Shown here in pieces: positions 1-63,129 of a stretch of 64,000 nucleotides of DNA. Position numbers and translations under genes: made by a program. Source of the DNA: Octopus sinensis (Eukaryota); assembly GCF_006345805.1 (NCBI RefSeq), contig NC_043006.1:78678001-78742000 (forward strand). The letters run 5' to 3'. Position 1 is the stretch's first letter, and every line of letters starts with the position of its first letter. The notes beneath the pieces are model-generated. The model was not told where the DNA came from, ran no database searches, and saw only the letters and a list, made by a program, of their open reading frames with translations.

Positions 1-326
1 AAAGTTTAGCACCGATATTAAATTGGAAACTATTAATTAAAAGTAAATCCCCGGTGGAAAGAATACAAAACATCCTTCCTATGTTCTATTTAAAGTTAAT
101 TTTTGGTTCATAGAACTCGTACCTGCGTTTTTAGGGAAGTCCAGCACATTGCTCAACTATGATATGCACTTCAGAAGTGCACGTAGTAGCTGATAGATAG
201 AGCTGATTATTGTTAGACGGGGTTAAAATAACATGCACTTTATGCATAAATTTGTATGTGTGTGTTTAGAACAAAAGCAAAGATCACAGCAGTATTTCAA
301 AATTTCATTATCTATATAAGTTCTAA

Positions 327-725
327 GGCGGTGAGATGGCAGAATCGTTAGCACGCCGAGTGAAACGGTTAGCGGTATTTCGTCTGCCGTTACGTTCTGA
401 GTTCAAGTTCCGCCGAGGTCGACTTTGCCTTTCATTCTTTCGGTGTCGATAAATTAAGTACCAGTTACGCACTGGGGTCGATGTAATCGACTTAATCCGT
501 TTGTCTGTCCTTGTTTGTCCCCTCTGTGTTTAGCCCCTTGTGGATAGTAAAGAAATAGGTATTTCATCAGTGTTTACGTTCTGAGTGCAAATTCCGCCGA
601 GGTCAACTTTGCCTTTCATCCTTTCGAGGTCGATTAAATAAGTACCAGTTACGCACTGGGGTCGATATAATCGACTAGGCCCCTTCTCCCAAAATTTTCA
701 AGGCCATGTGCCTAGAGTAGAAATA
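327..725 (+). mobile_element. tRNA-derived SINE family B (Meta-domain-like), dimer: head + body/tail X + body/tail Y
   Basis: Head GGCGGTGAGATGGCAGAATCGTTAGC at 327. Body contains GCCTTTCATCCTTTCG(G/A)GGTCGAT..AAGTACCAG, resembling the MetaSINE central domain. Second body starts at 558 after AAAGAAATA (184-bp period). Confidence 0.85.
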
Positions 726-754
726 ATCATCTATGTATTTTGTATATAAGTTTG

Positions 755-1120
755 ACTGTGTGGTAAGAAGCTTACTTCCCAACCACATGGTTCTGCGTTC
801 AGTCCCACTGGGTGACAACTTAGGCAAGTCTCTTCTACTTTATCCTTGGACCGACCAAAGCTTTGTGAGTGGATTAGGTAAAAGGAAACTGAAAGAAACC
901 TGTCGCATATATTATATACATATATCAAAATGTGTGTCATTGTATCTGTGCTTGTCCCCCTCCACTGCTTGACAACCGGTGTTGATGGGTTTACGTCCCC
1001 GTAACTTAGTGGTTCGGAAAAAGCACCCGGTAGAATAAGTACTAGGCATAAAAAATTAAGTCTTAGGGTCGATTTACTCGACTAAAACCCTTCAAGAGTT
1101 TTAGTCATGTCCCAGCATGC
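755..1120 (+). mobile_element. tRNA-derived SINE family A (internal microsatellite), degenerate
   Basis: CTGTGTGGTAAGAAGCTT...GTTCAGTCCCACTG head, GGCAAGT core motif, tail GTCCCCGTAACTTAGTGGTTCGG...GGTCGATTT; matches other copies in the window. Confidence 0.8.
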
Positions 1121-7990: not shown

Positions 7991-8244
7991 CATATACTTA
8001 TGCATGTAAACATACAACGAAAATGTGTTGCCGATATTTACGGTACGTAGAGAAACAAAATATGCGTAATTTCATCTGCAAGTATGGGAGACAACTCTGT
8101 TTCGCTTTTGAAGGCCAGAATGGGGTAAGGGAAATAAGTACAAATTAAAATAGACCGTCGCCAATGAGCAGAATATTAAAAAAACTTATGTTAGTAAGTT
8201 TGTTTAGTTAATGCTCTTTTAATACTCTCTTGAGTGCTTTCCAG

Positions 8245-8470
8245 CCACTTGTGGGTAGTAAAGAAATAGGTATTTCGCCCGCCGTTACGTTCTAAGATCA
8301 AATTCCGCCGAGGTCGACTTTGCTTTTTATCCTTTTGCGGTCGATTAAAAGTACCAGTTACGCACTGGGGTCGATGTAATTGACATAATCCCTTTGTCCT
8401 TGGCTGTCCCTTCTATGTTTAGCCCCTTGTAGGCAATAAAGAAATAATAAGACACTGCCTATTCCCAGTG
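8245..8470 (+). mobile_element. SINE family B, tail-body unit
   Basis: GTGGGTAGTAAAGAAATA|GGTATTTCG junction at 8269, then a body and tail X. Confidence 0.8.
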
Positions 8471-9919: not shown

Positions 9920-10335
9920 TCAAAATTTGGCACAAGGCCAGCAATTTTTGTGTGGAGTTAAGTCGATTACATCGACCCAGTACTCAACTGGCACTTACTT
10001 TATCGACCCTGAAAGGATGAACGCCAAGTCGACCTCGGTGGAATTTGGGCTCAGAACATAAGGACGGACGAAATGCCGCTTAGCGTTTTGACCGGCGTGC
10101 TAACGATTCTACTAACTCAATGCCTTAAGATACATCTTAATAAAGGCTTCAAGTATTGGCACAAAGCCAGTAATTTCAGAATAAGTAGGAGTTGAGCATC
10201 GATTCAAGTGTTTAACTCCTACTTCGACCCCGAAAAGACAAAAGGTAAATTCGACCTCGGCAGAATTTGAACTCAGAACTGCTGCTAAGCATTTTGCCCG
10301 GTGTGCTAACGATTCTGACAGCTCTCCGCCTCAAG
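9920..10335 (-). mobile_element. Two degenerate SINE family B copies
   Basis: GACCTCGG..GAATTTG..CTCAGAAC and TCGACCC.GAAAG motifs repeated. Confidence 0.7.
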
Positions 10336-19409: not shown

Positions 19410-19995
19410 AATATTCTTTTCTACTCTAGGCACAAGACCCGAAATTTTGGTGGGGTGATGCTGATCGATTAGATCAACCCCAGTACGCATCTGATACTTA
19501 AGTTATCGACCTCGAAAGGATGGAAGGCAAAGTCGACCTCAGCGTAATTTGCACTCAGAACGTAAACACTGATGAAATACCTATTTCTTTACTACCCACA
19601 AGGGCTAAACACAGAAGGGACAAACAAGGACAGACAAACGGATTAAGTTGATTATATCGGCCCCTGTGCGTAGCTGGTACTTATTTAATCGACCCTGAAA
19701 GGATGAAAGGCAAAGTCGACCTCAGCGGAATTTGAACTCAGAATGTAAAGGAAGACGAAATACCTATTTCTTTACTACCCACAAGGGGCTAAACACAGAC
19801 AGGACAAACAAGGACAGACAAACGGACTAAGTCGATGACATCGACTCCAGTGCGTAACTGGTACTTAATTTATCGACACCGAAAGGATGAAAGGCAAAGT
19901 CAACCTTGGCGGAATTTGAACTCAGAACGTACCGGCAGACGAACTACGGCTACGCATTTCGCCCAGTATGCTAACGTTTCTGCCAGCTCGCCGCC
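19410..19995 (-). mobile_element. SINE family B trimer (head + 2 x tail X + tail Y)
   Basis: Junctions AAAGAAATA|GGTATTTC at 19764 and 19581 (183-bp period). Confidence 0.85.
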
Positions 19996-20220
19996 TTTAA
20001 AGAAAGACAAAGTCAACCTCGGTGGAATTTGAACTCAGAACGTAAAGGAAGACCTGCGTGCTAACGATTCATTAAATAATGAATAACAAATGGTTCAAGG
20101 GAGAGAATTCTATTCTACTAACATAGTTGTCGAACTTCTCGTTATGTGCAATTAACATATAAATAAACCGTTGAAATATAATTTACTGAGGCACTCGTCT
20201 ATGAGAGTTGTTAATTTTTA

Positions 20221-33987: not shown

Positions 33988-35119
33988 ATGTTTTATATGT
34001 GAATTAGTGTAACACGTTAATCCTTCGAATAACCAAATACTATCATTTACTGTGGCTACATCAGTGGAATTGTTACTTGGATGGTGAATATTTCAGCGTA
34101 ACAGCTGTTTCAAATGTTGGCAAAAAAGAAAAAAAAACAGAAATTTGAGGGAAAGTGTACAGAGGATTAGATTGACTCAAATATTTGACTGATATTTTAT
34201 TTTATTGACTCCAGATAGTTGTAAATAAATTTGATCTGAAAATGTAAATAGTTGTACGCGGGGTAATACTGGTTTCAAATTTTGGCACAAGGCCAGCAAT
34301 TTTAGGGGATGGAGCTAATCGACTACATCGACTCAAGTGATCAACTAGTCCTTTCTTTGTTTATCCACTCCGGAAGGATGAAAGGCAAAGTTGACCTCGG
34401 TAGAATTTGGACTCGAATCATAAAGACGGACGAAATGTCGCTAAGCAGTCTCTCCAACGTGCTAACGATTCTGCCAACTCGCCCCTTTTCATTAAGGGTA
34501 ATAATGAACTCTGTACAAGTACCACATCTTTACACCAAATTGAACCAATGGAAGTGCTTCTTGCCTGCACAATCTGCTAGAAATAGCAACCAAATCACTT
34601 TGAAGTAAGACTCCTTCGTTTTAAGAAAGGTCACACTGGATGACATGATCTTGGGGTCTCTGCATATAAAAAAAAATAGACACTAGCTGAGCTGGCCACG
34701 GTTAGAACTCCTTTAAACAAGGGTACGTTTGATCAGGACTGACCTGCAACTAAACAACATATCATCATCGTCATTATCATCATCATCAACAATAAGAACA
34801 ACAACAAGAACAACAACAACAGCAACAACGACTACAACAGCAACATCACCACCACCACTATCAGCAACAGTCGACTTCAACAAGAGAGGGAGGACACGTT
34901 AAGCAGCGTAATCTGTAATGTATAAAAACACGACGGGTAAGCAATGGTTGATTTACTCTTATAGCTAGACGCCATTAGTTCAAGGTAACCTAATTTTAAA
35001 CAACAGCAACAACAACAACAATAGCTTCGATATGACTTAACTATTCAACTAATTACGGATTGCAGTCATACTAACTAGTTTTGTACAATAATACATACAT
35101 GTATTTCTCGGTTCGATCC

Positions 35120-49100: not shown

Positions 49101-49701
49101 AAGTCAGCCCGACCTGTCCGAGATGTTGGAAAGACAGGGAAACCGTCTTGCACGCGATCGTGCAGTGTTCGGAGGTGACAGATATGTGGGTTTTTGCCGA
49201 ACAACTGTTGTCAAATGGAGGAGGAGTACAGCTATCAGCTGAATCCATTGTAAAAATCAGCCCACCGGATTTCTTAACGAAAGAAGGTAAGAATTGTTTT
49301 CTCTCTGTGGTTTCAACTGCGAAACAGGTAGTGTGGAAGACAAGGATGAAAGGGATGATAACAGGCGACTTCATCTCTGGTTCTAGCCTGGTGGTGTTTT
49401 TTAAATTCCACCTGAAAAGACAAATAGAACTAGAGAGGAGGAGCCTGAGTAAGAAAGTGTTCAATGAAAGGTGGAAAAATGTCGTGAGTAAAAGGTCCCT
49501 CATAAATACGAGATAGGACGTAAAAGAAAAAGAAAAAAACATAAGACCAAGTGTCGCGGCGGGGTTCGTGGGGTTGTATCATTATTCGAAACCGTATAAC
49601 TATCATCCAATTTTTATCGACCCAAAATACATCATAACGTAAAAAATCATTCGTGATTGTTTTGCCCCCCTCTATGTAGCCTTTTATAGGTAATAAAGAA
49701 A
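46163..49701 (+). mobile_element. Tx1-clade (L1 group) LINE, 5'-truncated at the start of ORF2, decayed
   Basis: LNVRGL.., APE motifs, GKAPGLDGLP, DQSKAFDRV, VRQGCPLSP, AYADD, TCPRC..RETV.H; degenerate 19-20 bp TSD. Confidence 0.92.
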
Positions 49702-49767
49702 TTCACCGACACCCAAAAAACGAAGTCGTGCGAGCCGAGCCGAGCCTATATATGCATACATATATAA

Positions 49768-49829
49768 GGCGGTGAGCTGGCAGAAATATAGCACGCCGGG
49801 CGAAATGCTTAGCGGTATTTAGTCTGCCG
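49768..49829 (+). mobile_element. Head of a SINE family B copy split by the Tx1 insertion
   Basis: GGCGGTGAGCTGGCAGAA..GCACGCCGGGCGAAATGCTTAGCGGTATTTAGTCTGCCG, then LINE 5' UTR. Confidence 0.88.
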
Positions 49830-49993
49830 CACATGTGTTCGTGAAGTAAGAATTGCTGTTTCGTGGTGTTAATATTGTTAACAACTGTTGTTTCTTGTTA
49901 AACTGTTGAATAACTTAACTGTTGGAGTTTTCAATTGAAAACACTTAGTGCTTGTGGTAGCACGCGTTGTTCATTCCCCCTTTGGGGGGAAGA

Positions 49994-51523
49994 ATGTCGT
50001 CTAGCATGGAGCCTACCGTTGGAGCAGAAATACTTGTTTCTCCTGTTGAGAGGAGGAAATACATGTCCGGCGAGGAGCCAACTACAGACAAGGAAATAGG
50101 GGTTTCCCCCGCTACAAGAAGGAATAGCAGAGAGGATAATATATTTGATATTTTTGGAGATGTGTCTGAGAGCTCGTCAGAACTTTCAGCAGAAGAGTTT
50201 CCGACTTTGCCAGAGAACAAAGGCATTGTGTCGAAGAGAATAATTGATGTGCCTAGCATCCAGATAGAACCAAAAAATGGAAAAAAAAGTTTTGCGTTGG
50301 CTGCTGGGGGTGGAACCCAGATACTGTCGACGAATAAAAGCGAAATTATGAAATACAGCAAAATGATGGAAATAAATGACAACAGTGTGAAAATTGAACC
50401 TCCGCAAAAGTTATTACAGGAAGAAAAGCAAAAAACAATAATTTTCAAAACATATTGTCTACAAAATAGAAAAATTGAAAGAATGTCAGAAGAGAAAATA
50501 GAAAAGTGCTTAAAGCCAATATTGGGCGACGTAGTATTTCTGAGAAGAGGAAAAAAATTCGGAACGGTGGAAGTAAGGTTCACCAATAAAGAAATAGCAC
50601 ACAAGAACTCAGTGGAAACGTTGAAAACGAACGACGTGGAGTTAATACCCTATTATATGGGGATGAGGACGTCGTCACGAATAAAAATTACAAGGGTCCC
50701 GCCAGAGGTCGAACCTATGTGGTTGTTGGCGGCAGTCCTAATCAAAGAGGTAGAAAAAATTACTCTCCTCCAGGCTACCGCTACGGAAAACCCACGCTGG
50801 GATGGTAAAACAATTAATCTTCTCATTCAAGCGGACCCTAAAATAATTCAAACAATTCCTGAGACAATTGAGGTAGGGGAGGAGAACCTCGTGGTGTTTG
50901 TTGAGGGCCGAAAACCTCGATGTTTTTTATGTGGTCAATTAGGCCACATTCGAAGGAACTGCAAGGAAAATGAAGAAGAGGAGGAAGAGGAGAAAAAAGA
51001 CAAAGAGGAAGAAGATAAAGAAGAAACAGATGAGAAAAAAACAACAAACAAAAGAAAAATACAACCAGCAACCCAGCCGAGAGCGGCGACTACTACAGAA
51101 CAACGACCAAAAAAGACTGCCAGAAGAGAAAAAGAAGAAAAAGGCATAATAGCCGTATACACTAAAGATACTGAGCTCATGAGAGACATTCAACTCATAA
51201 AGACTGTAAAAAAAATTGATAACCTTTCAGAGGAATTTATCAATTACGACATATATGAAGTCTCAAATAAGACTTATAGAATTCTACAAAATAAGTACAG
51301 AAAGACTGTATCTTCATTGAGATTAGATTTTAACAAGTCGATATTTCATGGATTACCAGCTCCGATCCCGCGAGAAAAGGAAAAGGTGGAGATTCCCCCT
51401 CCACCTGATAATTCTGTGTCGGTGGTGAGACGGGACTTTGACAAATCTATTTCCCAAGACCGTCCACCTCCGACCCTGGATAAAAAAAAAGGTGGAGGGT
51501 CCCTCTCCACCGGACAATCCTAA
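49994..51523 (+). CDS. Tx1 ORF1 (nucleic-acid binding, CCHC knuckle)
   Basis: ~509 aa from ATG 49994; CFLCGQLGHIRRNC zinc knuckle; acidic/basic tracts. Confidence 0.88.
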   Translation: MSSSMEPTVGAEILVSPVERRKYMSGEEPTTDKEIGVSPATRRNSREDNIFDIFGDVSESSSELSAEEFPTLPENKGIVSKRIIDVPSIQIEPKNGKKSFALAAGGGTQILSTNKSEIMKYSKMMEINDNSVKIEPPQKLLQEEKQKTIIFKTYCLQNRKIERMSEEKIEKCLKPILGDVVFLRRGKKFGTVEVRFTNKEIAHKNSVETLKTNDVELIPYYMGMRTSSRIKITRVPPEVEPMWLLAAVLIKEVEKITLLQATATENPRWDGKTINLLIQADPKIIQTIPETIEVGEENLVVFVEGRKPRCFLCGQLGHIRRNCKENEEEEEEEKKDKEEEDKEETDEKKTTNKRKIQPATQPRAATTTEQRPKKTARREKEEKGIIAVYTKDTELMRDIQLIKTVKKIDNLSEEFINYDIYEVSNKTYRILQNKYRKTVSSLRLDFNKSIFHGLPAPIPREKEKVEIPPPPDNSVSVVRRDFDKSISQDRPPPTLDKKKGGGSLSTGQS

Positions 51524-51535
51524 TTAAACAGGTAA

Positions 51536-54500
51536 GTGATGGCTATTCACATTGGTTGTTTAAATGTTCATGGCCTGTTGTCAAGCTGGAAGCAAGGACG
51601 CTTTCTGAATGACATCAGGTCGAGAAATTTGGATGTAATTGTTGCAACGGAAACCCGGGTGAAGGGGCCAAGAGATCTGCTCCCCCTCCTGAACGGCTAC
51701 GAGAAATACGTTTCTCCGAGTCGGGCGGGAGGTGGGGATGGGGTGTTGGTCCTACTAAAAAGAAACCGGGTAGCCGAGAAAAAGTTGGTTTTTTCTGACC
51801 CAGAAGGCAGGCTGGTCGTTCTCGACTTGACATTCAGTTGTGGCAAGACAATCAGGCTGGTCGCTATTTATGCACCAAACATTATTGGCCCGCAAACTGA
51901 ATATTTTCGTGGCCTAGGAAAGTTCCTAGCCACGTCGCATTCACTAGTAGTGTTAGGAGACTCTAATACAATATGTGCAGCACACACAGATTGTGTTGGC
52001 TCAAACTCGAACATGAACAGAAAATGTAACACAGGCTTTCGGGATCTGCTAAGTCAATTTCAGCTAGCAGATCCATATAGGTTGGAGCACCCGAACACTC
52101 CACAGTGGACGTGGTCAAATAGTGACGGGTCTACCAGAACATATCTAGATAGGATTTTAATTAGAGAAAAAGATAAGTCCATAGTTGAGTGTCCACAGTT
52201 TTTTCTAGTCAGCTACAGTGACCACAAGATGGTTACCTGTAAACTGACGGTAGATAAGTTGCATAGACAGGGATCTGGCTACTGGAAACTCAATACGTCC
52301 CTTTTGGCGATTGAGGAGTACAGAAAGCGGATCAAGATGTTAATACAGAGGGCATTAACAGGTACCATCATTAATAACAAATGGTGGTACGCCCTAAAAA
52401 GAGCCATCAAATATGAGTCTATTAGGTTTAGCATAAGTTTAGCTAAGAAGGGACGTAAAATAGGAGATGGTCTAGTTAAGGAACTAGAAGAAGCCTGGAG
52501 GACTGGTAATACAGACCAAGCGAGGGTGAAAAGACTGGAGTTAAACCAGCATCTTGAAGCCCACCACATGGGAAGTATTACCAGAGCTAAGTTACGTGCA
52601 ATGGGAAGTGAAGGAATCAAAGCCGCTGGATGGGCCCGAGTGGTGGAAGCTCGGCAAGGAAATAGTTCCTCTATTCGGTCTTTGACGAATCAAAATGGTG
52701 TCTTGATAAACGAACCCGAGAAAATGTGTGAGGTCTTTCGGGAGTACTTCGCCCAGCTGTTCGGGGGTGACGGCGGTCCTGGTGGTGGGAGAGCCCTCGA
52801 GGACTTTCTTACCGGGCTGCCGTGCCTCTCGGGGTCGGATGCGGAGTCTTGCGAAGGGCCAATCACACTTGAGGAGGTGATGGAGGCTTTGGCCGATTGT
52901 AAAGCGGGTAAGTCACCGGGACTTGATGGTCTTCCGTACGAGCTGTATAAATGTATGCCAGACTTGTTCGGGCAACTACTGACTGACGTGTACGCGAACT
53001 GGAAACAGAATGGGTTTATCCCCAGATCTGTGCGCCGGGGAGTAGTGACGTTGGTCAGAAAGGACCCGGACAAGGGGGACGTTCTAGAGAATTTCAGGCC
53101 CATCACTCTGTTAAACGCAGAAGTGAAGATTTTGGCCAAGGTTCTAGCAAAAAGGTTGGCGCGTGTCGCGAATGGTATAGTCGGGGAGGCACAGACATGT
53201 GCCATCCCAGGCAGAACCATTCAGGATACCCTCCATCTTATTCGCTATACCATAGAGAGGTTTGGTAATAAATCTGGCAAAGGTGGGGCATTGGTGCATT
53301 TGGACCAGTCTAAAGCTTTTGATAGGGTTGACCATCGATACCTAGCGACTGTACTTGCGCGGTTTGGCCTGGGCCTTGGCTTCCTCAGGTGGTTTATCGC
53401 TTTGTACCACAACATTGACTCGATAGTTCGGGTGAACGGTTTCCTTTCGAAGCCGTTCTGCATCAGACGCTCGGTTCGTCAAGGATGTCCGCTTTCACCA
53501 CTTTTGTATGTGATGGCTCTCGAGCCATTACTGCAAAGGTTGAGTGGCATCCCGAGAGAACCAGGACTAGAGGAGTTTGTTACGGCTTTCGCGGATGATA
53601 TCACTATCAGTGTAACCACAGTGGTACGCCTACGTGAAGTAGGTAAGACTATTGAGGCTTACGAGGAGGTAGCAGGAGCAAAGATTAACCGGGAAAAGTC
53701 GGTCGGCTTGCAGCTCGGCACCTGGGTTGGCAAGTCGATGCCTTCAGACAGTGTTGTTAGGCGCTGGACGGAGGGACCGGTTAAGTTGCTGGGAGTCTGG
53801 TTTGGACCAGGCCTCCAGATAGAGAAGAACTGGACGGAGGTATTGAGCAGGGTGGCTGCAGTAGTCAAGACTTGGTCTTGGCGGTGGCTATCCCTGAAAG
53901 GGAGGGCGGAAGTGGCCAATGTGTTTATCGCATCGGTCATTACCTACCGCCTGACTGTCGTGCCCTGTCCGGATTCGTGGTTGATCAGGTTGGAGAGACA
54001 GCTCTTTCGCTTTTTGTGGAAGGGCAGGTCGCCACTTGTGAAACGCTCTGTCTGCTGTCAAAAGCCTTTAAATGGAGGTTTAGGGATGCCTTGGTTAATG
54101 ATGCGCAGACATGCGTTGAGGTTGAGGCACCTCTGGATTCTCCTGGATAGTGAACGGGTGTGGTCTCCGCTGGCCAGACAAATGTTCCCTGAGTTCAAGA
54201 GTTTTTGCGAACAGGAAGCCTGGTGTTCTCGTAGACCGAGGTCGAGTGAGTGGCATAAAGAGTGCCGTAAGGCCCTCTTGCTGTTCCGGCGCTCGGGCAA
54301 CGCCAGCGGTGGGGGTTCCACACGGATTTTATATAGTGGGTTGGTAGAGTCTGAATGCGACGATGGCCTGGGGTCGACTCTAGGTCTCGGATTTATTCAA
54401 CTGGACAGCTTGTTTCATCGTACATTCGGGTTGAGAACGTTGGACAACTTCCAAAAGTCCTTAACCTGGCAATGCTACAGAGGTGCCTTGCCCGTTTGGG

Positions 54501-54939
54501 ATAAGCTCGCAAGACATGGTAAACGTCAGTCGCCGACCTGTCCAAGATGCGGTGGGGACAGGGAAACCGTCCCTCACGCTATTGTTCAGTGTCCGGAGAT
54601 AACTGAAATGTGGGCTTATGCTGAACATCTGTTGTCCGGCGAAGGAAGAGTACGGCTGTCGACTGAGTCAATTATAAAAATTGACCCACCGGGAGTTCTA
54701 ACGAACGAAGGTAAGAATTGTTTTCTCACGGTTGTAGCAATAGCAAAAGAGGCTGTATGGAATACTAGATAAAAGGAATTAAGACAGGCAACTTTATCTC
54801 TGGTGACAATTTACGATCCTTTTTTTCTTTTCATTTGAAAAGGAAACTGTGGCTGGAGAAGAGGTGTCTGTCAGAGTGTACGTTCCAAAAGAGATGGAAG
54901 TATGTTGCACGAGTGTTGTGCGTGCAAGGAACCGTGTGA
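51536..54939 (+). CDS. Tx1 ORF2: AP endonuclease + RT + zinc finger; single -1 frameshift at ~54770
   Basis: IGCLNVHGL, ATETR, IYAP, GD.N, YLDRIL, SDH, GYWKLN, QGCPLSP, FADD, TCPRC..ETVPH. Adding one A restores TRIKGIKTGNFISG.., homologous to copy 1, ending at TGA 54939. Confidence 0.92.
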
Positions 54940-55188
54940 ATAGACGAGGAAAAAAAAAAAAAAAGGAAAAATAAAAAGGTACCAGCGGTAGATCGGGGCT
55001 TGTGGGATCGGAGCGTAACTTGATCATCGCTTCATTTGTATTGTTTTTGTACTGTGTATTCCATTCGATTTTTATGTATTGTATTTTATTTTTGATGTCA
55101 CATTTATGTAAAATCATATCGATTCACTGATCCCATCAGTTGTACTGTCCATATCTATGTTTGGCCCCCGGTGGGCAATAAAGAAATT

Positions 55189-55737
55189 GGTATTTCGTCT
55201 GCGTTACGTTGTGAGTTCAAATTCCGCCGAGGTCGACTTTGCCTTTCATCCTTTCGGGGTCGATAAATTAAGTACCAGTTACGCACTGGGGTCGATGTAA
55301 TCGACTTAATACCTATGTCTGTCCTTGTTTGTCTCCTCTGTGTTTAGCCCCTTGTGGGTAATAAAGAAATAGGTATTTCGTCTACCGTTACGTTCTGAGT
55401 TCAAATTCCGCTAAGGTCGACTTTGCCTTTCATCCTTTCGGGGTCGATTAAATAAGTACCAGTTGCGCACTGGGGTCGATATAATCGACTTAATCCGTTT
55501 GTCTGTCCTTGTTCGTCCTCTCTGTGTTTAACCCCTTGTGGGTAGTAAAGAAATAGGTATTTCGTCTGCCGTTACGTTGTGAGTTCAAATTCCGCCGAGG
55601 TCGACTTTGCCTTTCATCCTTTCGAGGTCGATAAATTAAGTACCAATTGCGCACTGGGGTCGATGTGATCGACTTAATCCGTTTGTCTGTCCTTGTTTGT
55701 CCCCTCTGTGTTTAGCCCCTTGTGGGTAATAAGGAAA
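55189..55737 (+). mobile_element. Three tandem headless SINE family B bodies
   Basis: Units start GGTATTTCG at 55189, 55372 and 55556 (183-184 bp). Confidence 0.9.
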
Positions 55738-55835
55738 CATATATATGCATACATATACATATGTATGTGTATAATGTGCGTGTGTGTGTATCTATGCATG
55801 TATATATGATGTGTGAACATAAACATATATCTGTT

Positions 55836-56200
55836 GAGGCGCGATGGCCAAGTGGTTAGCGCAGCGGACTCGCGGTCGTAGGATCGTGGTTTCGATTTCC
55901 AGACCCGGTGTTGTGAGTGTTTGTTGAGTGAAAGCACCTAAAGCTCCACAAGACACCGGCAAGAGTGGGGGGCGAATCCTTCTGTACTCTTTCACCATAA
56001 CTTCTCTCACTCTTTCTTCCTGTTTCTGTTTTACCTGTATTTCAAAGGTCCTGCCTTGTCACACTCTGTGTCACGCTGAATCTCCCCGAGAACTACGTTA
56101 TGAGTACACGTGTCTGTAGAGTGCTCAACCCCTTGCACGTTAATTTCACGACCAGGCTGGGATCAACTGGAACCCTCGTCGTCGTAACCGACGGAGTGCC
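55836..56200 (+). mobile_element. SINE family C
   Basis: GAGGCGCGATGGCCAAGTGGTTAGCGCAGCGGACTCGCGGTCGTAGGATCGTGGTTTCGATT head. Confidence 0.85.
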
Positions 56201-62800: not shown

Positions 62801-63129
62801 AGGTACACCATCCACTTGGGGAATTTTTGTTGTTAATTATTAGTTTTTATTGAGACACGGGTTTATGTAAACGCTCATTCTCCTTCATGCTTGTGTAGAC
62901 CTAAACGTTTTCACTTTGGGCAAAATGCTTAGCGATATTTCGTCTGTCTTCACGTTCTGAGTTCAAATTCCGCCGAGTTCGATTTTGCCTCTCATCCTTT
63001 CGGGGTCAACAGAATAAGTATCAGTTGAACACTGGGGTCGATATAATCAACTCGTCCTCTCGCTCCAACTTTCAGGCCTTGTGCCTTTAGTAGAACGGCT
63101 AATAATTATTATTACTGCTTACTTGATTT

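Follow-up and report, generated by a model that had tools for sequence, protein, structure and literature searches.

In the genome of Octopus sinensis (assembly GCF_006345805.1), a stretch of 64,000 nucleotides of contig NC_043006.1 (positions 78678001-78742000 of the contig, forward strand; hereafter the window) contains several copies of a 233-bp SINE, a full-length LINE that lies inside one of these copies, and arrays of about 184-bp units. The SINE, called A here, has a tRNA-like head (about positions 1-95), a core, and a tail ending ..GTGGGTAGTAAAGAAATA. In the arrays, the tail ..AAAGAAATA of one unit is joined to an internal position of the SINE head, position 50 (GGTATTTC), of the next unit. 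A sequence-only reading of the window proposed that each array has a single head and that the LINE 3' end joins the same position. It further proposed that a Tx1 endonuclease nicks the SINE head, that SINE RNA is reverse transcribed there, and that the cDNA anneals to a ~16-nt overhang, so that each event adds exactly one headless body. In this study, we aimed to test this observation and its interpretation in the window and across the 2.72-Gb genome (13,516 contigs). The features of the window are listed in Table 1.

Table 1. Features of the window (positions from the first nucleotide of the window; headless units begin at SINE position 50).
Position	Strand	Feature
325-557	+	Complete SINE A, unit 1 of a two-unit array
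558-725	+	Headless B2-type unit; the whole array 325-725 is flanked by the direct repeat TATATAAGTT
740-850		Other tRNA-like sequence, probably the head of an unrelated SINE family
8243-8268	+	3' tail (..CTTGTGGGTAGTAAAGAAATA) of another element that shares the tail, joined to SINE position 50
8269-8446	+	Headless SINE A unit (positions 50-233)
9958-10126, 34319-34487, 62923-63052		Sister SINE families
19417-19581	-	Unit 3: headless unit of sister family B2, core 50-168 as in A but a different tail (..GTGCCTAGAGTAGAAAAGAATA), tail end approximate (~19417); likely founder of the array
19465-19947		Period-184 tandem array (TRF)
19582-19764	-	Unit 2: headless SINE A, positions 50-233, starting GGTATTTCG directly after the tail of unit 1
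19765-19997	-	Unit 1: complete 233-bp SINE A (tail ..GTGGGTAGTAAAGAAATA), C50-type head (GCGTAGC/CGTAGTTCG)
19999-20068	-	SINE fragment (head remnant plus about positions 58-112) directly upstream of unit 1
49650-49703		3' end of a further element with the same tail type, joined to non-SINE DNA
49747-49764	+	5' copy of the founder SINE's target-site duplication, TATATATGCATACATATA
49766-49829	+	SINE head positions 1-65, split from its body by the LINE
49814-49829	+	Last 16 nt of this head (GGTATTTAGTCTGCCG), 5' copy of the LINE's target-site duplication
49830-55188	+	Full-length LINE, 5,359 bp, 3' end ..GGTGGGCAATAAAGAAATT
49961-51523	+	LINE ORF1, open (zf-CCHC)
51536-54772	+	LINE ORF2, open (APE-type endonuclease, RT, zf-RVT)
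55154-55737		Period-184 tandem array (TRF)
55189-55371	+	SINE positions 50-233 directly after the LINE; the first 15 nt (GGTATTTCGTCTGCG) are the 3' copy of the target-site duplication
55372-55555	+	Headless SINE A unit of a different subfamily (GATTAAATAAG) from its neighbours (GATAAATTAAG)
55556-55737	+	Last headless SINE A unit
55740-55757	+	3' copy of the founder's target-site duplication, TATATATGCATACATATA
55838-55900		Other tRNA-like sequence, probably the head of an unrelated SINE family

Materials and methods

The tail-position 50 junction was searched in the window and compared with the number expected from shuffled sequence. Tandem repeats were identified with TRF, and unit boundaries were determined by BLAST with the 233-bp SINE. 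Genome-wide counts and listings were obtained with exact patterns in 35-nt listings, with the reversed 17-mer as a control for the junction; where a listing showed 100 places, proportions refer to those 100. Unit structure and divergence were analyzed in a 264-kb sample, consisting of the window and 20 loci of 10 kb centred on junctions (L001-L020). Thus, 200 kb of this sample was chosen because it holds a junction. Six further loci of 3 kb were also retrieved. Array lengths were counted on the first 13 Mb of contig 1 (C1; other contigs are numbered likewise). LINE proteins were searched against Pfam and compared with solved structures. The window was also searched with ARAGORN and Rfam. Full-text literature searches were carried out for descriptions of such arrays and of LINEs that target a SINE head.

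Results

The junction is exact and recurs genome-wide

The observation of the sequence-only reading was confirmed. The 17-mer formed by AAAGAAATA and GGTATTTC was found with the first G of GGTATTTC at 558, 8269, 55372, and 55556 on the plus strand and at 19581 and 19764 on the minus strand, all exact. It was also found at 55189 with one mismatch (AAAGAAATT, the LINE tail). That is 7 matches against 0.04 expected. BLAST showed that each downstream unit starts at SINE position 50. One correction is needed: at 8269, the upstream partner is only the ~26-nt 3' tail of another element, not a SINE body. This tail and the element 3' end at 49650-49703 have a hairpin with a compensatory change (CCU/AGG) and probably represent other subfamilies of the same LINE group.

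Genome-wide, the exact 17-mer occurred 23,988 + 23,985 times (47,973 in total), whereas the reversed control gave 0 + 2. Exact SINE A tails numbered 64,302. Of an unselected list of 100 of these tails on C1, 53 were joined to position 50, 2 to position 18, none to any other SINE position, and 45 to non-SINE DNA. Hence, of 55 tails followed by SINE sequence, 53 joined at position 50, and the junction positions are not scattered; scattered positions had been named beforehand as a pattern that would count against the model. The junction to position 18 is a second recurrent one, in which a complete tail is followed by AGAAACGTTAGC. It was also seen at L008:4976/4977, L007 ~4725, and L015 ~4827, with no target-site duplication and no obvious similarity to the main site.

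A single head per array holds for most arrays. In our reading of the 264-kb sample, 17 of 24 arrays start with a complete head on unique flank, 3 start with a LINE or other element 3' end, and a few are 5'-truncated or keep a head remnant. Of 75 arrays on the first 13 Mb of C1, 63 had one exact junction, 9 had two, 1 had three, and 2 had eight.

The SINE head reads like a tRNA (GGCGG...TGGCAGAA...GAGTTCAAATTCCGCC), although ARAGORN and Rfam reported nothing in the window. ARAGORN also did not call the other tRNA-like sequences of the window (for example GGCGCGATGGCCAAGTGGTTAGCGCAGCGG...GGTTTCGATTTCC).

The LINE inserts almost only at one nucleotide of the SINE head

Pfam found Exo_endo_phos at residues 23-230, RVT_1 at 514-755, and zf-RVT at 974-1026 of ORF2, and zf-CCHC in the separate ORF1. 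The best solved relative of ORF2 was human L1 ORF2p (E = 3e-64 over residues 6-868), whereas R2 scored 1e-20 over the RT only. The element is thus closer to L1-type than to R2-type enzymes. Placement in the Tx1 clade rests on hints only: one homologue is named 'Transposon TX1 149 kDa protein', and an O. vulgaris annotation lists L1-Tx1 elements averaging about 5.4 kb (421 insertions, 2.29 Mb; PMC13282606).

Genome-wide, there were 108 full-length LINE 5' ends. Of the 100 listed, 99 were preceded by (G/C)GTATTTCGTCTG(C/T)CG, that is, they followed SINE positions 50-65. There were 165 3' ends of this subfamily, and about 86 of the 100 listed were followed by SINE position 50. Pairing of the ends by coordinates gave 59 LINEs of about 5.35 kb. 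The position-50 variant was C on both sides in 38 and G on both sides in 21, with none discordant. Chance concordance would be about 0.54 per pair; therefore, both copies come from one target, and this is a true 16-bp target-site duplication.

Seven upstream heads were complete, sat on unique, unrelated flanks, and differed by 15% pairwise, whereas the adjoining 1.5 kb of LINE differed by only 2.6%. The LINE therefore entered old SINEs. The downstream arrays also differed between copies. On these grounds, the ideas that the LINE carries the SINE head as its own 5' part or moves as a SINE-LINE-SINE composite were rejected. The idea that the 184-bp unit is part of the LINE 3' UTR was likewise rejected, because the sequence after the LINE is the target and its C/G variant matches the 5' copy.

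The base before the site was C (head context) in 96 of 99 listed LINEs and A (an internal tail-position 50 junction) in 2, yet junction sites (48,484) are about as common as heads (55,264). Recognition therefore needs the upstream head sequence as well. The 5' copy of the 16-mer carried recurrent variants that the matching 3' copy lacked: A57 in 6 LINEs, including the window copy, and AG58-59 in 5. Part of this leader may travel with the LINE RNA, which would suggest co-transcription from the head and a homology-guided 5' join for the LINE as well.

Array units are mostly independent copies

SINE A and the LINE align over about 85 nt at the 3' end, the last ~20 nt are nearly identical, and both have a small hairpin before AATAAAGAAAT. 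In the 264-kb sample, 45 A units were compared. Pairwise distance was 0.103 within arrays (n = 23) against 0.118 between arrays (n = 967; p = 0.064), and shared derived variants were 1.8 against 1.4. Units within an array are thus about as diverged as random copies. Neighbouring units often differed in subfamily markers, for example the three units after the window LINE. Only L007 units 1 and 2 were near-identical (1.1%).

At least three sister SINE families share the head and core of A but have other tails: B1 ends ..GTAGAAAGGATTATTATT(ATT)n, B2 ends ..GTGCCTAGAGTAGAAAAGAATA, and C ends ..GCCAAAATTTGAAACC. They occur throughout L001-L020, presumably have different LINE partners, and all are used as targets. 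The last unit of many arrays belongs to one of these families. B2 units lay 10.7% from their own consensus, against 7.1 +/- 0.9% for A units treated the same way, and are therefore older residents. Units with the B2-like signature also occurred with their own head (1,126 against 2,600 after a tail). The idea that B2 exists only as the second half of an A+B2 composite was rejected on these two grounds. A gradient with unit 1 youngest was only a trend (9 of 12 arrays by our count).

Whole arrays are flanked by a single direct repeat, as in the window for the LINE-bearing array and for 325-725, and similarly in L016, L020, L009, and L006. Everything between the repeats was therefore added inside one founder. 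Solo copies had duplications of 14-17 bp, and that of one array was about 20 bp. The non-SINE flanks of A tails began with TATAT (16 of 47), GGTA (11 of 47), or GATA (3 of 47), and the duplications of solo copies start at these motifs.

Duplicated heads are almost absent

Rare unresolved insertions exist. In L020, a full SINE sits at an internal junction, preceded by GGTATTTCGCGTGCTG plus 3 nt. In L017, a resident head 1-70 lies upstream of a new SINE. Their expected mirror product, the junction of position 65 to position 1 (..GTCTGCCG to AAGGCGGCG), occurred only 37 times exactly and 45 times with 0-4 nt of filler allowed, against 47,973 tail-position 50 junctions. Some of these form head-only tandem arrays of period 65 (C1:195358956-195359245; C18:40399010-40399169; C6130:31535-31811; C3430:1378-2207). 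The C3430 array repeats the same 2-nt filler 11 times, which points to local duplication. The SINE fragment at 19999-20068 shares GTCTTCCTTTAC with unit 2 of its array. It was considered as a long (50-112) duplication of unit 2, but it is otherwise no closer to unit 2 than to other copies; it may be a remnant of a resident head or an unrelated neighbour.

A crossover fixed at the 16-nt overhang is not supported as the general rule

Strict annealing to the 16-nt overhang predicts that unit 1 keeps the resident's head and positions 50-65, so that units 1 and 2 agree at position 50. Two head types exist: 34,221 exact G50 heads (ATGCTTAGC/GGTATTTC) and 21,043 exact C50 heads (ATGCGTAGC/CGTATTTC). 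However, tail-C50 junctions numbered only 511. In the first 13 Mb of C1, 5 of 59 C50 heads (GCGTAGC/CGTATTTC) were followed one unit later by a G50 junction, and the window array at 19997 is another example. Positions 50-65 were no more alike between neighbouring units (0.110) than positions 66-233 (0.112), although the power of this comparison is low. The incoming element therefore often keeps its own head. Conversely, L011 and L012 share resident-type sequence well beyond position 65, which points to conversion or variable second-strand breaks.

The junction is also a palindrome, GAAATA-GG-TATTTC (window 549-565 and every other junction), in which the last 6 nt of the tail are the reverse complement of target positions 52-57. 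The tail is therefore identical, not complementary, to the primer strand, and no priming role could be derived.

Local duplication enlarges some arrays

Long arrays with 8 or more junctions occur at C1:8970276-8971801, C1:12138973-12140264, and C1:42138192-42138757. Where the sequence was listed (the first and the last of these), they show repeated rare variants or higher-order structure, with a higher-order pattern at C1:8970276-8971801. C1:7400076-7400476 has three units with the same rare variant, and several arrays repeat an identical 27-mer. The long arrays are satellite-like amplification on top of the insertion process, and unequal crossing-over or slippage is real in a minority of arrays, mainly long ones. 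Two sampled arrays (L005 and L013) start with a 5'-truncated unit and have no resident head upstream, which whole-array retrotransposition or deletion would explain more simply.

Discussion

The interpretation offered by the sequence-only reading is partly supported. The analysis shows that a site-specific non-LTR retrotransposon of the L1/Tx1 group targets the tRNA-like head of a group of SINE families: the bottom strand is opened between head positions 49 and 50 and the top strand 16 nt downstream (65/66), so that the LINE sits between head 1-65 and body 50-233 with a 16-bp duplication. What happens to the SINE is inferred from the anatomy of arrays in one genome. In this view, SINE A carries the LINE's 3' end and is copied by the same or a closely related enzyme at the same nick. 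Because its cDNA is homologous to the resident SINE, the 5' side would be joined through that homology. Each event would add one 184-bp step, in which the resident becomes a headless unit (50-233) and one head remains at the 5' end. The surviving head may come from the incomer or the resident, and the crossover point varies, which fits a full-length cDNA annealed to the resident head as a heteroduplex that is then repaired or segregated. This intermediate is also an inference, and a join fixed at the 16-nt overhang is not supported as the general rule. The LINE copied here ends AAATT and is young, whereas most SINE junctions are older; hence, the actual mobilizer may be an earlier relative. 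Arrays should grow mainly at the head end, because LINEs almost never use internal junctions. Off target, the same machinery would insert at ^GGTAT, ^GATA, and TA-rich sites with 14-20-bp duplications, and such insertions would found new arrays; the enzyme would thus have a short core preference (^GGTAT), of which the SINE head is the favoured extended version. With these reservations, serial, homology-resolved insertion is the best-supported origin of most junctions, and we hold it with fairly high confidence.

Three other explanations were considered, all unlikely for most arrays. The first is that dimeric or trimeric SINEs (A+B2, A+A+B2, and so on) arose once or a few times and were amplified as whole transcripts. 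A+B2 is the commonest architecture in the sample, this model also predicts one direct repeat around whole arrays, L005 and L013 begin with a truncated unit, and the units contain no TTTT stop, so read-through transcripts are plausible from the sequence. However, architectures are very diverse, with 1 to at least 8 junctions per array, terminal units of type A, B1, B2, or C, and LINE or other elements upstream. B2 units are more diverged (18.6% pairwise, with indels) than A units (12.4%), B2-like units also occur with their own head, no position-specific diagnostic variants were seen, and the LINEs with true target-site duplications prove repeated cutting at this nucleotide. The second is template jumping, in which the RT runs to the 5' end of a processed, headless SINE RNA (5' end at position 50) and jumps to the 3' end of another. 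It would give exact junctions, one head at the 5' end, units from different source genes, and 5'-truncated arrays without a head. However, the same nucleotide is a DNA nick site with a 16-bp duplication for 59 of 59 paired LINEs, unresolved SINE insertions keep a 16-nt target duplicate, and terminal units are older than upstream units. An RNA-level process also does not predict that C50-type elements are heads 21,043 times but headless units only 511 times, and upstream partners are A-tailed even when the last unit has a B1 or C tail served by other LINEs. Finally, unequal crossing-over or slippage after a rare first dimer would account for the near-identical units of L007, the long arrays (two of 75 arrays have 8 junctions, far more than a simple one-step process predicts), and the C3430 filler, but most arrays are dimers whose units are as diverged as random copies and belong to different subfamilies or families, and this process cannot create the junction or explain LINE ends at the same nucleotide; it remains valid for the long arrays only.

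Target specificity, including for other transposons, is a feature of the Tx1 clade. In crocodilians, Tx1-Mar LINEs and the SINE that they mobilize, SINEU-3, share one specific target in another repeat, with a 16-bp duplication, and tandem SINE insertions arise by sequential insertion at the duplicated site (Kojima 2015, PMC4494074). The present case works in the same way. In crocodilians, however, the target is an unrelated Mariner DNA transposon, and each tandem copy is complete and separated by a target-site duplication. Here, the target lies inside the SINE's own head, about 99.9% of events leave no duplicated head, units are headless, and the scale is far larger (about 48,000 exact junctions and about half of the SINE's tails); L020 is an example of the rare complete form. 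Xenopus Tx1L in Tx1D, and Keno, Mutsu, Kibi, and Koshi, are also APE-endonuclease LINEs of the L1/Tx1 group that insert at one defined sequence in a multicopy target, but their targets are DNA transposons, snRNA or 5S genes, or microsatellites (summarised in PMC4494074). In R2 and R1 of rDNA, 5' junctions are helped by co-transcribed target sequence (Eickbush 2000 and Fujimoto 2004, cited in PMC4494074). In both cases, the 5' junctions are precise and appear to be guided by homology to the target, and the 5' copies of the 16-mer here carry LINE-lineage variants that their 3' copies lack. However, R2 uses a restriction-like endonuclease and an rRNA gene target, and co-transcription is only inferred here. 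SINE-derived satellites and dimeric or trimeric SINEs, such as the tRNA dimers cited in PMC4758252, also place SINE sequence in tandem units, but arise by fusion in a master copy or by unequal crossing-over, whereas most junctions here appear to be made anew by targeted retrotransposition. No description of these arrays, of a LINE that targets a SINE head, or of a target in a tRNA-derived SINE head that is also the LINE's own dependant was found in the full-text literature, with Repbase notes and subscription papers outside the reach of the search.

The broadest reading, which we consider more likely than not, is a LINE whose endonuclease is specific for the promoter head of its own SINE dependant. 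LINE insertions would split the SINE's A and B boxes, and SINE insertions at the same nick would be resolved through self-homology into head-capped arrays. Retrotransposition itself, rather than unequal crossing-over, would then seed a 184-bp satellite and account for about half of the copies of a major octopus SINE. This raises the question of whether a LINE that disrupts its parasite's promoter is exploiting a safe landing pad or restraining the SINE. The specificity of this APE-type LINE depends on sequence on both sides of the nick, since internal junctions that keep only the downstream half are used about 40-fold less often, which bears on how such enzymes read DNA and on interest in site-specific retroelements as integration tools. 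The contrast between the two elements at one site isolates the role of homology in 5' end joining: the LINE, which has no homology to the head, always keeps the 16-bp duplication, whereas the homologous SINE almost never keeps a second head. Homology-guided resolution is the simplest reading, and the near-total absence of duplicated heads would give a natural read-out of such joining in target-primed reverse transcription. The finding gives a concrete, testable route from SINE to tandem array and satellite seed, with tens of thousands of natural events in the genome. It also changes how octopus SINE counts, ages, and 'tandem repeats' should be read, because more than half of these SINE units are array members rather than independent loci.
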